Source: Asterias rubens
Lineage: Eukaryota
Length of the DNA: 64,000 bases
NCBI RefSeq assembly: GCF_902459465.1
Contig: NC_047071.1
Location: forward strand, 19,592,001-19,656,000
Reading direction: 5' to 3'
Position 1 is the stretch's first letter. Each line of letters begins with the position of its first letter. Positions 13,501-22,259 of this stretch are shown one piece after another. Under the pieces are notes generated by a model. The model did not search any database. It was given only the letters and a program-made list of their open reading frames with translations, and was not told where the DNA came from. Made by a program: the position numbers and the translations under genes.

Positions 13501-15134
13501 ACGACTGCTGATTACTTAGTTACGATGATCGTGACTGTGGCTCTCGAGTGCCCCGATTTAACAGTGACCCGATAACAAACAGTTCAACCGGTATAAATCA
13601 CAGTCAGTACAGGTGCAAGACACCTTGGGGATATTGGTATCTAAATCATTGTTGCTATAAAAGAAAAAATTACCCCGGTTACCAAGCAACCTACACACTG
13701 AGGCTATTCTCGTTTAAATCAAGAAATCACGTTTTGAACTCTCTAAATCCAAGTCAACTTAGGTCAAAATTATGTTACTTCAACACTTAATTAGTTGAAT
13801 ATCGATATTTAAAACTTCTGCATTTTGTCAAAGGACGTAACTTAGTTGAAGAAAATTTGAATTCGAAACCTACTCCTTGTTTTTTTCCCGTTTTACTATT
13901 AATACAAGTACGATTGAGAAAAAGAATTCTCAAACTGAAAGAAACCACGAAACTTCTTTCTCTTTCTCTAGTCGACCGAGGTCGGAGTCATGTTGAGGCT
14001 TGTCCATCCCTTTCTATCAAAATCAAACTTGAACTGCTAAGTTTTTCGAAAACCTGACCTTATTTCAAAATGTAGTCAACTTATGATGTGAGTGAAAACT
14101 GGTTATTGTGAACTAATAGATTAAAATGGCTACACCCTTCCCCCAAATCACTCTTTAAGAATCTCACCTCGTCATGTGCTTGAAAGAAGACAAGCAGCTG
14201 TTGTGACGTATTTTCCAAAGGCAAATATATGTAACTTCTGGAGCAATTTTGTTCTTTTGAGTTCTGACAACTAGGATTGAAAAGAATGTCATTCTAATAC
14301 GAATCATGTGAAGTAATCATTATTGATTATTCAACATCGGGTTTTTAGCTGTTCCGACCTACCGTCGGAACAGGTGTTGTTTTCGTCGAGATTTTTATTA
14401 TTTTTAGCTATTCCGACCTACCGTCGGAACAGGTGTTGTTTTCGTCGAGATTTTTATTATTTTTATTATTATTATTCTTTGTTTCCGCCTAAAACCCCAT
14501 AGCGTTTGTACAGCGTTTTTGTTCAGGCCCCCGTCTCCTAAAGTATGAGGATAAAAGAGTTAAATCATATATCAAATTGAAGCTTAGAACATAAGCTTTA
14601 CTCTTACAAAAAAGTGTTATAATTCTTAATTAATTAACCACGTGGTCTTCATTTGAATTTTTAATTTGTAAACTTGATGCAGTCACTTGTGAAACATTCT
14701 CTTTTGGTAATACAACACAGTATGTACCTCAATGAGTTGTTGACTTCTTGAGAGGAGTCTATACTATTTTGTTTCCTACCCGCGTTCTGGACACATTACT
14801 CTGTACACGCACAAAGTACGGAGGTTTGGGATTTTCGTTAGAACGTGCGTTAAATTTGTCCTTGTTTTTCTAACCGCGTTCTGGACCAATTACTCTGTGC
14901 ATGGATGCTCTATGCATGGGTAATTAGATAGGGGTTTTTGACGACATCGACGTCGTCGTCAAAAACCCCCTTAAGGCATATAATACTACATTTCAACCCT
15001 ACTTAATAGTTATAGGCGTTAGCAGTTCATATTTAGTGACAATGGTAGCAAAATCATGAAACGAGAATTATTTCGCCGGATCATAATCCCCTCTGTTGAT
15101 GCACACATGTAAAAACCCACCATTTTTACATCGT

Positions 15135-15205
15135 GCCCTTCTAGCCTAGTGGTCATCAGTCGCGACTACACATCTGAGAATTGCGAGTTCGAATCTCCGT
15201 CCGAA
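15135..15205 (+). promoter_or_regulatory. tRNA-like type-2 Pol III promoter (A box and B box) inside the inner Helentron
   Basis: TAGCCTAGTGG (15142-15152) and GAGTTCGAATCTC (15185-15197). T8-to-G53 spacing is 45 nt, as in tRNAs. The acceptor stem does not pair, so this is not a tRNA gene. Confidence 0.6.
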
Positions 15206-15866
15206 ATCAATATTTTTTATCCCCCAAAACTAAAAATATATTTCTTTTTGTAATATTTAAGTTTGATTCTTATCTTTATATCGATAGTGTTGCCTTTTCT
15301 TTTTCTCAAATGTTAGCCCAACATAACCTGTGTGCATGCATGACACGATGATGTTTAAAAACAGAGTAAGCGAAAAATGGTGACCATAAGCGCAGAGTTT
15401 GGTGGTTAAGAGTTCTGTGAAATCAACTTTTACTAGATCAAACATCAAACCACCGACCCCAAACAAAATTAAAAATCGTAATTAATTAACCACGTGACCC
15501 ATATTTGCATATTTAATTGTACAAGGGGACAAAATTGTTGGAACTTCCTGTTGATGCTGACATCATGAGAACATCAGCATAAGTATTGAAATTGCACTAC
15601 CTATTGAACCACTTGGAGTGTTCAAGGAGTCCAACACGTCAGTCTAGAGTCCAACTCTGATTGTAAAAATCAATTCAGGCATCATCTTCAATTTAATTTT
15701 ATGCAACAAGCAAACTTATAAATTTTCTGATTTTATTTCAAAGGGTAACATAAATGGCTGTTAGCGAACGGTTTCCAACAAAAACTACATGGTGTACGTG
15801 CACAATACTCTTACTGGCCTCAAGCATTTACCTCTAGATAATAAATCAAGCATACAGTTCAAAATT

Positions 15867-16194
15867 ATAAAAGTTTGTTATTGCCACATTATTCAGCGAA
15901 CCATGAATCATACACAGCTACTATTCACAAGAAAATCTATGTGTGGAGGGTAACAGACAGCACACAATGGAACCGGAGTTTAACAATGACAAAGTCAAAA
16001 GTGCAATCGTCCGCCCTTGAAGTTTATTATACATGGGCTGATGGTGATCAAAAGGATAAAAGTTTGTTATCGCCACATTATTCAGCGAACCATGAATCAT
16101 ACACAGCTACTATTCACATGAAAATCTATGCGTGGAGGGTAACATACAGCACACAATGGAACCGGAGTTTAACAATGACAATACCAAAAGTGCA
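15867..16194. repeat. 189-bp tandem repeat (~1.7 units) in the inner Helentron copy
   Basis: ataaaagtttgttat(t/c)gccacattattcagcgaaccatgaatc... at 15867 and 16056. Confidence 0.9.
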
Positions 16195-16711
16195 TTTGGG
16201 TATTTTGTTTATCTGTTTCATTTAAATATATGGTTAAGTTTTATTTTACGCTAAATGTTTTTGTGTTTGTTCTTCCTGTAATTTTGAATTGTTTTGCCGC
16301 TACATAAGATTACACCCACTAAATACAATTGCTTACATTGCTTTCCTCAATAGAAAAAAGGGGGGGTCCGTACTCGTTAAGGTTTGCTTTTTATGGGCCC
16401 CTCCATCCCCTACATGTGTTTTGCATTGATTTTTAGTTTTTGTTTTCTATTATTGTACGATTGCATTTGCTTGTAATAAATGATTTATTACCTTCTGTGT
16501 AGACTAAGCAAGTTTCGCGCGTATTTAAACTTGCGGGACCAATATGTTCCAAACCTTATGGAGTTTTACGTGGGACATTTTTGTCCGTCCATTATTTTAG
16601 TTTAACGTAGTTTATGACCATGAATATTAGAAATATTGTTGGAAATGTAATACTAGTTAACAAAACGTATACAAGTAAAATCATTTCAACAACAAAAATC
16701 CTATACTTTTG

Positions 16712-17040
16712 GGATGTCGACTTCCCGAGATAAATTATCACAGGAAGACGACAACCTAATTTTCGGATGTTGACTTCCCGAGATAAATTATCACAGCAAG
16801 ACGATATCCTACTTTTGGGATATCGACATTCCGAGATAAATTATCACAGGAAGACGACATTCTTCTTTTAGAATGTCGACTTCCCGAGATAAATTATCAC
16901 AGGAAGATGACAACTGACGTTTAGGATGTCGACATACCGAGATAAATTATCACAGCAAGACGACATCCTACTTTTAGGATGTCGACATCCCGAGATAAAT
17001 TATCACAGGAAGACGACATTCTTCTTTAATAATGTCGACT
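16712..17040. repeat. 53-bp minisatellite (6 units plus a partial) inside the inner Helentron copy
   Basis: ggatgtcgac(t/a)t(c/t)ccgagataaattatcacaggaagacgacat... Units start at 16712, 16765, 16818, 16871, 16924, 16977 and 17030. Confidence 0.95.
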
Positions 17041-17049
17041 GTTTGTAGT

Positions 17050-17570
17050 TATAAGACTCCTTGGGGATAGGAGAAAAACTTGGAAAAACCGTGACCTCAA
17101 TTTGACCTCTACTTCCGGGTCAACCGGAAGTGGGACCATATCTCAAGAACTACTCAACCGATTTTCAATTTGTTTTCACTTACAGACTCCTTGACATTAA
17201 TATTGACTGTGAAAACCCGTGACCCCATGTTGGCCTCTACGTCCGGGTGAACCGGAAGTGGGACCATACGCCAAGTACTATACAACCGATTTTCAATCCT
17301 GTTTGTTCAGTTTTATCCTCCTAAGGCATTAAAAATAAACTTTGAAAATCCATGACACCAAGTTGACCTCTACTTCCGGGTCAACCAGAAGTGGCACCAT
17401 ATCTCAAGAACTACACAACCGATTTTCTAACTTTCTTTCAGTTACAGACTCCTTGGGCGTTACAGATTAGCCTTAGGTTACCGTGACCCCATGAAGTGGC
17501 ACCGTAACTCAAGACACTGTACAGTATTTTTCAAACTTTTTTCAGTTATAGACTCCTTGGTAATTTTAAC
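17050..17570. repeat. Diverged ~105-130 bp subrepeats near the Helentron 3' end (mirrored at ~20600-21110)
   Basis: Recurrent gactccttg ... gtgacc ... acttccgggtcaaccggaagtgggaccata ... caaccgattttc blocks. Confidence 0.8.
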
Positions 17571-18322
17571 ACATAATCAAAGCAAAAGAACACGGAACAG
17601 CTTTGTGTTTGTTCACAAACACCTAATGTCTAGTTATTATTATTATTATTCTTTGTTTCCGCCTAAAACCCCATAGCGTTTGTACAGCGTTTTTGTTCAG
17701 GCCCCGTCTCCTAAAGTATGAGGATAAAAGAGTTAAATCATATATCAAATTGAAGCTTAGAACATAAGCTTTACTCTAACAAAAAAGTGTTAAAATTCTT
17801 AATTAATTAACCACGTGGTCTTCATTTGAATTTTTAATTTGTAAACTTGATGCAGTCACTTTCATGTTATTGTGAAAAATTTTCTTTGGTAATACAACAC
17901 AGTATGTACCTCAATGAGCTGTTGACTTCCTGAGAGGAGTCTATACTATTTTGTTTCCTACCCGCGTTCTGGACACATTACTCTGTACACGCACAAAGTA
18001 CGGAGGTTTGGGACTTTCGTTAGAAGGTGCGTTAAATTTGTCCTTGTTTTTCTAACCGCGTTCTGGACCAATTACTCTGTGCATGGGTTTCGTTAAAACG
18101 AACGTGCGTGATTAGATAGGAGTTTTTGACGATATCGACGTCGTCGTCAAAAACCCCCTTAAGGCATCTAATACTACATTTCAACCCTACTTAATAGTTA
18201 TAGGCGTTAGCAGTTCATATTTAGTGACAATGGTCGCAAAATCATGAAACGAGAACTATTTCGCCGGATCATAATCCCCTCTGTTGATGCACACATGTAA
18301 AAACCCACCATTTTTACATCGT

Positions 18323-18393
18323 GCCCTTCTAGCCTAGTGGTCATCAGTCGCGACTACACATCTGAGAATTGCGAGTTCGAATCTCCGTCCGAA
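18323..18393 (+). promoter_or_regulatory. Same tRNA-like A/B box segment inside the outer Helentron
   Basis: TAGCCTAGTGG at 18330 and GAGTTCGAATCTC at 18373; identical to the 15135 copy. Confidence 0.6.
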
Positions 18394-19054
18394 ATCAATA
18401 TTTTTTTAACCCCAAAACTAAAAATATATTTCTTTTTGTAATATTTAAGTTTGATTCTTATCTTTATATCGATAGTGTTGCCTTTTCTTTTTCTCAAATG
18501 TTAGCCCAACATAACCTATGTGCATGCATGACACGATGATGTTTAAAAACACAGTAAGCGAAAAATGGTGATCATAAGCGCAGAGTTTGGTGGTTAAGAG
18601 TTCTGTGAAATCAACTTGTACTAGATCAAACATCAAACCACCGACCCAATTTTTTTTTTTAAATCGTTATTTATAAACCACGTGACCCATATTTGCATAT
18701 TTAATTGTACAAGGGGACAAAGTTGTTGGAACTTCCTGTTGATGCTGACATCATGAGAACATCAGCATAAGTATTGGAATTGCACTACCTATTGAACCAC
18801 TTGGAGTGTTCAAGGAGTCCAACACGTCAGTCTAGAGTCCAACTCTGATCGTAAAAATCAATTCAGACATCATCTTCAATTTAATTTTATGCAACAAGCA
18901 AACTTATAAATTTTCTGATTTTATTTCAAAGGGTAACATAAATGGCTGTTAGCGAACGGTTTCCAACAAAAACTACATGGTGTACGTGCACAATACTCTT
19001 ACTGGCCTCAAGCATTTACCTCTAGATAATAAATCAAGCGTTCAGTTCAAAATG

Positions 19055-19500
19055 ATAAAAGTTTGTTATTGCCACATTATTCAGCGAACCATTAATCATA
19101 CACAGCTACTATTCACAAGAAAATCTATGTGTGGAGGGTAACAGACAGCACACAATGGAACCGGAGTTTAACAATGACAATACCAAAAGTGCAACCGTCA
19201 GCCGTTGAAGTTTATTATACATGGGGCTGATGGTGATCAAAAGGATAAAAGTTTGTTATCGCCACATTATTCAGCGAACCATGAATCATACACAGCTACT
19301 ATTCACATGAAAATCTATGCGTGGAGGGTAACATACAGCACACAATGGAACCGGAGTTTAACATTGACAATACCAAAAGTGCAATCGTCAGCCGTTGAAG
19401 TTTATTATACATGGGGCTGATGGTGATCAAAAGGATAAAAGTCTGTTGTCGATACAACCGCCCACTTAAATTCAACGGACCATGAATCACGGACCATACG
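19055..19500. repeat. 190-bp tandem repeat (2 units plus a diverged third start) in the outer Helentron copy
   Basis: Units start at 19055, 19245 and 19435. Confidence 0.9.
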
Positions 19501-20231
19501 CACAAAATATATATTCGAAAGAATATCCATATAATAGATTTGTCTGGTGTATAAACTGATGTCCCAGCCATTGGATTTTCGTGTTTTTTTGCTAGATTCC
19601 TCGCTCCCCAACCAAAGTGACTACAAAACGTCTCTAATGGATAACAATGGTATATTTCGACATGGTTTTTTTCCCAGCAAGAGTTGTGGGGCCCAATTTA
19701 TCTAGTATTTATTTTTGGTATTTTGTTTATCTGTTTCATTTAAATATATGATTAAGTTTTATTTTACGCTAACTGTTTTTGTGTTTGTTCTTCCTGTAAA
19801 TTTGAATTGTTTTGCCGCTACATAAGATTACACCCACTAAATAGAATTGCTTACATTGCTTTTTTCGTTAGAAAAAAGGGGGGGGGGGTCCGTACTCGTT
19901 AAGGTTTGCTTTTTATGGGCCCCTCCATCCCCTACATGTGTTTTGCATTGATTTTTAGTTTTTGTTTTCTATTATTGTACGATTGCATTTGCTTGTAATA
20001 AATGATTTATTACCTTCTGTGTAGACTAAGCAAGTCTCGCGCGTATTTGAACTTGCGGGACCATTATGTTCCAAACCTTATGGAGTTTTACGTGGGACAT
20101 TTTGTTTCGTCCATTATTTTAGTTTAACGTAGTTTATGACCATGAATATTATAAATATTGTTGGAAATGTAATACTAGTTAACAAAACGTATACAAGTAA
20201 GATCCTTTCAACAAAAGAAATCCTACTTTCG

Positions 20232-20590
20232 GGATGTCAACTTCCCGAGATAAATTATGACAGGAAGACGACATCCTAATTTTAGGATGTCGACTTCCCG
20301 AGATAAATTATCACAGCAAGACGAAATCCTACTTTTGGGATATCGACATTCCGAGATAAATTATCACAGGAAGACGACATTCTTCTTTTAGAATGTCGAC
20401 TTCCCGAGATAAATTATCACAGGAAGATGACAACTGACGTTTAGGATGTCGACATACCGAGATAAATTATCACAGCAAGACGACATCCCGAGATAAATTA
20501 TCACAGGAAGACGACATCCTACTTTTAGGATGTCGACATTCCGAGATAAATTATCACAGGAAGACGACATTCTTCTTTAAGAATGTCGAC
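20232..20590. repeat. 53-bp minisatellite inside the outer Helentron copy, with one extra 31-bp truncated unit
   Basis: Units start at 20232, 20285, 20338, 20391, 20444, then (after a 31-bp extra) 20528 and 20581. Confidence 0.95.
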
Positions 20591-22259
20591 TGTTTGTAGT
20601 TATAAGACTCCTTGGGGATAGGAGAAAAATTTGGAAAAAACCGTGACCTCAATTTGACCTCTACTTCCGGGTCAACCGGAAGTGGGACCATATCTCAAGA
20701 ACTACTCAACCGATTTTCAATTTGTTTTCACTTACAGACTCCTTGACATTAATATTGACTGTGAAAACTCGTGACCCCATGTTGGCCTCTACGTCCGGGT
20801 GAACCGGAAGTGGGACCATACGCCAAGTACTATACAACCGATTTTCAATCCTGTTGTTCAGTTTTATCCTCCTAAGGCATTAAAAATAAACTTTGAAAAT
20901 CCACGACCCCAAGTTGACCACTACTTCCGGGTCAACCAGAAGTGGCACCATATCTCAAGAACTACACAACCGATTTTCTAACTTTTTTTCAGTTACAGAC
21001 TCCTTGGGCGTTAGAGATTAGCCTTAGGTTACCGTGACCCCATGAAGTGGCACCGTAACTCAAGACACTGTACAGTATTTTTCAAACATTCAGTTATAGA
21101 CTCCTTGGTATTGTTAACACATAATCAAAGCAAAAGAACACGGAACAGCTTTGTGTTTGTTCACAAACACCTAATGTCTAGTTGCTTGTTGTTTCTTGTC
21201 ATGACCAAACAGACACCATAAACGTCCTCACGAAGTGCGCGAGTGAACGTTCACCCCTGCCACCAAAATCCTCCTCTCACAATCAATATTTTGTAACCAT
21301 CTGTGACAACTGAAACACTCAATCTACAAAACAAATTGTAAAGAATATAACAATTACATGGAAATTGACATCATGAAGAGCGGAAGATTGAGGTTTCCCC
21401 CTGTGGACATAAGTTCTATAATGGTTTTAATTTCCACGTCACCTTGTAGAACCCGGGACATTATTAGAAGGTAAGGATATCGACAGGTGGGGAATAATTT
21501 ACGATCTCTGCATGACACTCTCCACCAGGAAATCACTAATAATAAGGTATCATTGACAAAAACAAATTGCATTTTTATTTCTGAAGTAGCTGTATGTCAT
21601 TGGTAAACTGGTGTGACCGCGGGAAAACGCGAGGTTGTGCGAGATTACTCGACACTGTACGGTAATGGTATACTGTCCCTGTAGTATCGCAATAGCGGGA
21701 GTCTGCGAGACTTTGCAAAGTTCAAACTTGTTTAATTATTATGTGCTCTACATTTTAGCCAGTAAGGTATAACTAAATAGGCAGTTGAAGCTACCCTGTC
21801 CGCCAAATCAAAGGTTGAATAACACACGTGACACCCTCGCAGGGACCACAAACAATAATATGCGAAACTTCCAACCACTGAAAATGGAACTGGGGTGAGG
21901 CGATGACGTAATTTTCAAGGAATTCTAACCCTTTGTCTAATTTCAGACCCTAATCGTAAAGGTTAATGTAGTTATTAAAGTAAGGAATAAGTGTCTGGAC
22001 AAGGTTGGCAAGTAGATATCAATCTACTCTCACTAATGTGCATTTGATTGGACTCGTCGTGCGGTTACAGTTAAGTAGTCTTGACTAGTGAAGTAACCAC
22101 AGAGCGGGCCCACTATGTGCCCAATGCATTCGCAAGGCTGTGATTAAGCGCATAACGTAGGAGTAAAATATGCACAAAGAGTACATGCAGTGGAAATACA
22201 CCTGTCGGTGAGAATTCGCCTTGCTTTATTTTAAAGTATTTACTATTTAGTAGCAAGTA

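Follow-up and report, generated by a model that had tools for sequence, protein, structure and literature searches.

The closest described relatives of the DNA treated here are the HINE and DINE-1-like elements, that is, non-autonomous Helentrons characterized by Thomas et al. 2014 (PMC4067079), by Yang and Barbash 2008 (PMC2374699) and, for the oyster Cg_HINE, in PMC7492417. They combine a 5′ subterminal inverted repeat (subTIR) and an adjacent complementary inverted repeat with a left-arm microsatellite, central tandem repeats, a 3′ subTIR followed by a short palindrome, and Ts at both ends; they are non-coding and insert after WTT (W, A or T) in T-rich DNA without a target-site duplication (TSD). 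The 5′ subTIR lies within about 2 to 4 nucleotides (nt) of the terminus and the 3′ subTIR about 38 to 60 nt from the 3′ terminus (PMC4067079), a short palindrome is expected beyond the 3′ subTIR, at 8 to 35 nt from the 3′ terminus, and the DINE-1 target has been reported as WTT (PMC2374699). All of these features are shared by a 6.8-kb structure at positions 14347-21183 of the 64-kb window of Asterias rubens DNA that we analyzed (C11:19592001-19656000 of assembly G000, which comprises 417.6 Mb in 150 contigs; C-numbers denote contigs of this assembly, L-numbers individual copies of the element family and X-numbers public sequencing runs). The subTIR is shorter here, 10 bp compared with 12 to 15 bp in mite HINEs and 13 bp in DINE-1, and, unlike in the published HINEs, the microsatellite, (ATT)n, repeats the preferred target in tandem. 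Neither insertion into the element's own left-arm microsatellite nor multi-headed elements are described in the three papers.

Other transposons are known to build arrays by site preference. In Drosophila, double insertion of P, hobo, jockey, R1 and other elements at a preferred site yields direct-repeat dimers that can seed satellites (McGurk and Barbash 2018, PMC5932611; neither Helitron nor DINE nor INE-1 turned up in a term search of that text). As in those dimers, site preference in our case puts a second copy in or beside the first; however, the Drosophila copies lie end to end with TSDs in the junction, whereas here the preferred site lies inside the element and the product is nested. 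The SaTar Mutator-like elements (MULEs) of guayule and rice (PMC5907723) are likewise small, non-autonomous and microsatellite-targeting and form multimeric arrays, but they belong to the Mutator-like cut-and-paste superfamily and their arrays are explicitly non-nested and consist of unrelated elements. Finally, PMC2267711 (cited in PMC5876387) deals with head-to-tail Helitron pairs and arrays in the maize and bat genomes, for which consecutive insertion is debated against rolling-circle read-through. Same-orientation adjacency is common to those arrays and to the tail-to-head junctions reported below, but the maize and bat arrays join canonical Helitrons (5′ TC, 3′ CTRR, AT target) end to end, whereas the window contains an internal insertion into the 5′ arm.

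The structure is arranged in the order head-head-body-body, with coordinates exact to the base. The 59-bp heads at 14347-14405 and 14406-14464 are identical at 58 of 59 positions, the sole mismatch being a G-to-A change within the inner 5′ subTIR (14410), and they are followed by body A (14465-17635, 3.17 kb) and body B (17636-21183, 3.55 kb). The two bodies share 92 to 96% BLAST identity including gaps, with a substitution distance of about 0.03 across the first 1.4 kb, and their lengths differ because the copy number of the 190-, 53- and ~133-bp internal tandem repeats differs. Each unit opens with AGCTGTTCCG right behind TT, and the following bases pair with part of AGCTGTTCCG in a hairpin, which in head 1 has a 10-bp stem and a DNA folding energy of -11.9 kcal/mol (z -6.1). 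Downstream of the hairpin the sequence reads ...GATTTTT ATT ATTTTT (ATT)n CTTTG, and both units close with the 3′ subTIR CGGAACAGCT, a stem-loop with a 7- to 8-bp stem and a terminal CTAGTT. No TSD was found at the locus, and the remainder of the 64-kb window holds no further family copy. The parts are as follows, outer and inner referring to the resident and the inserted copy.

14345-14346, + strand: TT immediately 5′ of the outer element, either target or terminal Ts; TT ends 26 of 27 independent family 5′ flanks, most often as AATT or TTTT
14347-14405, + strand: 5′ head part of the outer copy, with the subTIR AGCTGTTCCG at 14347-14356, the hairpin at 14349-14373 and the T-rich tail cut after ...ATTATTTTT (evidence: fold and X15 contig)
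14406-17635, + strand: inner copy, a complete 3,230-bp non-autonomous element; head at 14406-14464, subTIR G-to-A change at 14410
Parts of the inner copy, + strand: (ATT)4 at 14465-14476, 3′ subTIR at 17593-17602, stem-loop at 17605-17622, CTAGTT at 17630-17635
15859-17453, + strand: central tandem repeats of the inner copy, 190 bp x2 at 15859-16237, 53 bp x6.3 at 16704-17040 and 133 bp x2.9 at 17076-17453
17636-17650, + strand: remainder of the outer head, (ATT)5, which restores the modal intact head when joined to 14405
17651-21183, + strand: body and 3′ end of the outer copy, with the 3′ subTIR at 21141-21150, the stem-loop at 21153-21170 and CTAGTT at 21178-21183
Central repeats of the outer copy, + strand: 190 bp x2-3 at 19047-19456, 53 bp at 20220-20590, 132 bp x2.9 at 20637-21006

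We put at roughly 85% the probability that this arrangement arose when a complete 3.23-kb non-autonomous Helentron copy entered a resident 3.6-kb member of its own family in the same orientation. The point of entry would be the T5/(ATT)n tract that follows the resident's 5′ hairpin, and no target sequence would have been duplicated. Deletion of 14406-17635 joins 14405 to 17636 and yields GATTTTTATTATTTTT + (ATT)5 + CTTTG with zero gain or loss. The (ATT)5 version thus restored is the modal intact head, found in 24 of the 89 exact-anchored intact heads genome-wide, while the (ATT)4 version of the inner copy accounts for 10 of the 89; the junction of tail, (ATT)5 and body is unique in the assembly (C11:19609626). 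In a maximum-likelihood tree of 29 family copies (1.4 kb aligned), the outer copy groups with L005, L022, L015, L008 and L011, located on C7, C11:20.4 Mb, C1 and C14, in a clade with support of 98/93. The inner copy falls outside this clade, nearest to L003 (C4) and L040 (C7) at path distances of 0.015 to 0.017. The path between inner and outer copy measures about 0.031, and each has relatives at 0.015. Pairing the two as sisters is rejected by the approximately unbiased (AU) test (p = 0.0012), at a cost of 63 log-likelihood units. The copies are therefore independent family members and not the products of a local tandem duplication, whose units should be mutual closest relatives, or of a false duplication by the assembler. 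Both junctions of a nested self-insertion are present, removal of the insert restores the host element, and insert and host are independent. The initial annotation had proposed that a single event explains both the 59-bp and the 3.2-kb duplication; the exactly restored head, the separate clades and the AU test bear this out, and we regard the locus as a nested insertion of the ordinary sort, in a HINE family that is new.

The family itself is sizeable. With the inner copy as the query, at least 35 full or partial copies were recovered at 91 to 96% identity on most chromosomes. The median terminal branch in the 29-copy tree is 0.006, which indicates recent amplification and agrees with the young 3- to 3.6-kb family that had been suggested from the window alone. 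When the copies are compared with the published descriptions of non-autonomous Helentrons, AGCTGTTCCG stands directly behind the flanking TT and CGGAACAGCT begins 43 nt from the 3′ end, and these 10-bp subTIRs were seen in the two window copies as well as in every family copy inspected. The 10-bp stem at 14349-14373 is kept among head types even as its loop varies, and the 7- to 8-bp stem located 13 nt from the end is conserved in all 3′ ends listed. An (ATT)4-13 microsatellite lies behind the head and repeats of 190, 53 and 133 bp lie in the center; the longest open reading frame (ORF) of the element comprises 116 amino acids (aa). The flanks recorded above conform to WWTT, with the element starting immediately after the second T, and the family 3′ end reads CTAGTT followed by any base. 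One copy, L027, is inserted in a genomic (ATT)13 microsatellite. There is no TSD, and three nested sites, in the window and on C17 and C13, restore the canonical head exactly upon removal of the insert. The Helentron/HINE architecture and the TT-site insertion without TSD that had been claimed for the locus thus hold for the family, and the element is a non-autonomous Helentron (HINE/DINE-1-like) that agrees with every structural feature tested, its 10-bp subTIR being the sole deviation.

As regards individual copies, three pairs have common flanks (L037 at C7:3.547 Mb and L040 at C7:0.301 Mb; L006 and L019; L009 and L010), and there the element therefore sits inside larger duplicated or repeated segments. 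L037 resembles an L040 from which head 2 and the initial 420 bp of the body are missing. We considered this pair, with one and two heads between common flanks, as evidence on the origin of the heads and rejected it, a 480-bp deletion in L037 being the best explanation. In the 5′ flank of L020 (C8:361,0xx), the full head is preceded, at a distance of 2 nt, by a head start truncated to 9 nt (AGCTGTTCC), perhaps what is left of a head that was aborted or deleted.

The window's junction is one of many. Exact-pattern searches of the assembly, which cover the wider head-sharing superfamily and not just the 3-kb family and whose reversed-pattern controls were all 0, found 626 heads by an 18-mer (571 by a 28-mer with at most 3 mismatches). 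An intact head was followed by a body in 89 cases, a 3′ end by a headless body within 30 nt in 40, a 3′ end by a head within 12 nt in 55 and a head by another head in 367. The 40 headless-body junctions are spread over about 20 contigs, with (ATT)5 only at the window's junction. In about 31% of the bodies with this start motif the head is split by another element. What remains of the head behind the inserted 3′ end consists of NTT units in phase (ATT 25, TTT 11, GTT 3). Among the 55 tail-to-head junctions, about 32 are direct, CTAGTT/AGCTG, and about 23 carry an ATT-type spacer. The 367 head-to-head junctions fall at about 10 offsets, each after TT, with a spacing of 52 to 80 bp. Their spacers (none, ATT, ATTATT, ATTATTTTT, ATTATTTTTATT and so on) are successively longer prefixes of the canonical tail; they vary even inside a single array and always end in TT, and therefore fit insertion after successive WTT motifs and not slippage of one unit. 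No insertion in the opposite orientation was found in any head (0 cases), as would be expected with TT confined to a single strand of the tract. Genome-wide, the T5/(ATT)n stretch that follows the 5′ hairpin is a hot spot for insertion in the same orientation.

These counts (40, 55 and 367 junctions next to 89 intact heads) sustain the earlier suggestion that the family targets its own T-rich head as a route to tandem arrays. The initial annotation had also named a routinely doubled 59-bp head in other copies as an observation that would speak against nesting. Doubled heads are, taken literally, routine in the superfamily, but not as a fixed feature, in view of the variable spacing and the mixed head types. 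Since, in addition, 23 of 29 loci of the 3-kb family are single-headed, the multi-headed copies are further products of the same process. Simple slippage of a variable-number tandem repeat was considered for the head arrays and is ruled out by the differing spacers within an array, the ~10 offsets and the mixed head types.

Nesting also crosses subfamilies. At C17:9.92 Mb, a 0.9-kb element with 79 to 82% identity lies inside the head of a 96% copy, and its removal restores GATTTTTATTATT/TTTATT... exactly (the slash marks the joint). At C13:10.83 Mb, four heads, one 3.2-kb body and one tail lie inside the split head of a copy of an 82% subfamily, the halves of which fit exactly. Furthermore, arrays combine three head types that are distinct in the hairpin loop. 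No duplication mechanism can produce such cross-subfamily nests and mixed-head arrays.

Two further loci lie on C3. Tandem units that recur regularly, about every 5.97 kb, occupy C3:813,700-837,800, with double heads at 813759/813812, 825693/745, 831665/717 and 837636/688 and 3′ ends at 815853, 821821, 827786 and 833757; this looks like the tandem amplification of a composite unit with two heads. At C3:20,880,423-20,885,295, three heads 53 bp apart are followed by junctions of a 3′ end with a headless body at 20883317, 20884372 and 20885249, which is likely a nested stack ('matryoshka').

The readings that compete with a single nested insertion can be judged against these data. If the 59-bp head and the 3.2- to 3.5-kb body had been duplicated locally in two unrelated events, by slippage or unequal crossing-over, the call of the heads as a 59-bp x2.1 repeat by Tandem Repeats Finder and the abundance of multi-head arrays in the genome would be as expected. 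However, the body duplication would require a breakpoint exactly at the 3′ terminus of the element, the inner and outer bodies are not closest relatives by the AU test, the identical architecture is seen with bodies that are just 79 to 85% identical, and the head-to-head spacing differs between loci; we regard this origin as the least probable of all. An assembly artefact, in which reads of different family copies were mis-joined via common repeats, is scarcely more credible. Dozens of family copies of similar sequence would offer the opportunity, and the public runs consist of short k-mer contigs that end inside repeats at 14447-14487 and 17625-17661. On the other hand, the copies differ by about 3% substitutions and several indels and hence are no false duplication, the same type of nested junction recurs at the 40 places already counted, the contig is chromosome-scale, and a contig of an independent run, X15, covers 13800-14371, from the flank into head 1, with zero differences, so that the outer insertion is not confined to the assembly. 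In X1, which is probably the source sample, one contig has small insertions (CAACCCG, C, GT) at 14319-14322, some 25 nt before the start of the outer element, and stops exactly at 14346, possibly representing a variant haplotype of the flank.

Somewhat less remote, but still improbable, is a history in which the nesting took place elsewhere and the whole head-head-body-body composite was then transposed here via the outer head and the outer 3′ end. Rolling-circle elements are able to read through an internal 3′ end, and composite multi-head units seem to act as single inserts, as on C13; yet the junction of tail, (ATT)5 and body occurs at no second place in the assembly, so that no sibling or source composite was seen. 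Several observations weigh against our preferred reading of a nested insertion. For the continuity of the 6.8-kb structure we depend on the assembly, and no empty-site allele was seen, the short contigs stopping within repeats and being uninformative on the internal junctions. The folding energy of the 3′ stem-loop is not significant (z -0.3 to -0.7). An autonomous Rep-helicase Helentron with matching termini was not found, although the termini around the matches to the PF14214 profile were not inspected. Finally, 367 head-to-head junctions stand against only about 63 tail-to-remainder junctions (40 plus the ~23 with an ATT spacer before the head); the majority of stacked heads thus have no stacked body to go with them, and a second step must be assumed.

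The PF14214 profile (Helitron_like_N) itself matches at 13 places genome-wide, in open frames of up to 1,921 aa, some of them of 1,300 to 1,900 aa. Eight of these 13 Rep matches lie within C15:12.46-14.0 Mb, including the longest frame, 1,921 aa at 12917596; others are found at C2:149256 and C92:15560. No exact heads or tails were found near the Rep matches on C2 and C6 among those listed.

A route to the nested arrangement can be drawn from established HUH/rolling-circle biology. A Helentron Rep-helicase acting in trans would nick after TT at the 5′ end of the donor (TT/AGCT), one strand would be peeled off up to CTAGTT, past the 3′ subTIR and the hairpin, and the freed strand would be joined to a target cut after a WTT motif. 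The left arm of the element offers a tandem run of WTT on one strand, adjoining the hairpin, and would therefore be both a hot spot and a tract that forces the same orientation. The product would be head[head-body]body, and the process, which recurs genome-wide, gives nested stacks, multi-headed elements and head-to-tail arrays. IS200/IS605-family HUH transposons insert as a single strand, in a specific orientation, 3′ of a short motif that also flanks the left end of the element. They are prokaryotic and use a single-domain Y1 transposase; the likeness to our element is one of behavior.

As to the excess of heads, bodies could be lost by homologous recombination between stacked bodies (collapse), or heads could be multiplied by re-mobilization from the outer head to the first 3′ end, the multi-headed unit then inserting whole. 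The C13 unit may have inserted as such a single multi-headed piece. Premature termination in the T-rich tail might also yield head-only products, indistinguishable in the present data from nesting followed by collapse. Recombination, re-mobilization and premature termination are each compatible with the loss of bodies or the multiplication of heads.

How strongly the heads are preferred can be gauged by rough inference, with no computed statistic. The head tails total a few tens of kb, or about 1e-4 of the genome, and at least a tenth of the counted 3′ ends lie inside them. WTT occurs about once per 3 nt in the tails compared with an estimated once per 17 nt per strand genome-wide (from 37.7% G+C), so that, by this rough inference, head insertions would exceed a plain WTT preference by about two orders of magnitude. 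At least 2,148 (ATT)>=5 tracts preceded by two non-T bases were counted in the genome; (ATT)>=4 stands behind 107 of the 3′ ends, a figure that pools head-borne and genomic tracts. Only 1 of 27 outermost insertions of the 3-kb family (L027) lies in such a tract, and at least 3 insertions lie in heads, numbers too small to tell an effect of the neighboring hairpin from a plain microsatellite preference. It is conceivable, and we suggest it only tentatively, that the hairpin and the T5/(ATT)n left arm together form a homing pad, in which the resident 5′ end would recruit Rep or present the target to it, and insertion would exceed the WTT or microsatellite preference. Nested products might then be re-mobilized from the outermost head to the first 3′ end into multi-headed elements, and self-nesting might be a regular directional engine for head arrays and satellite-like arrays.

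Some features of the locus lie outside these questions. A 39-nt near-perfect palindrome (GGGGTTTTTGACGAC...GTCGTCAAAAACCCC) is present within both bodies, at 14931-14969 and 18119-18157. At 17088-17224, within the 133-bp internal repeat, k-mer depth far exceeds that of the rest of the element in all four runs (427,000 in X1, compared with ~130-300 in the flank), and the repeat unit is therefore common to far more abundant elements or to a satellite. Apart from two short ones, no ORFs of at least 110 aa were found in the 24 kb around the element, and an Rfam search of the element gave no match. Scans of metagenomes gave 0 matches for the junction of tail, (ATT)5 and body and 0 for the 28-nt head.

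Nested or adjacent rolling-circle elements, head-to-tail arrays and site-preference dimers are already known; what is new is the oriented, genome-wide self-targeting of the left arm. Standard repeat pipelines will mis-annotate such stacks as minisatellites or tandem duplications. Helentron derivatives, such as DINE-1 in flies and HINEs in oysters and other invertebrates, have repeatedly been tied to the birth of satellite DNA, and it is still debated whether dispersed copies turn into tandem arrays by rolling-circle read-through, double insertion or recombination. The present genome provides a clean natural data set for this debate, with hundreds of oriented junctions in nested pairs, multi-headed units and head-to-tail arrays. 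Should heads be preferred beyond what microsatellite targeting yields, this would point to target choice guided by the end of the resident element.

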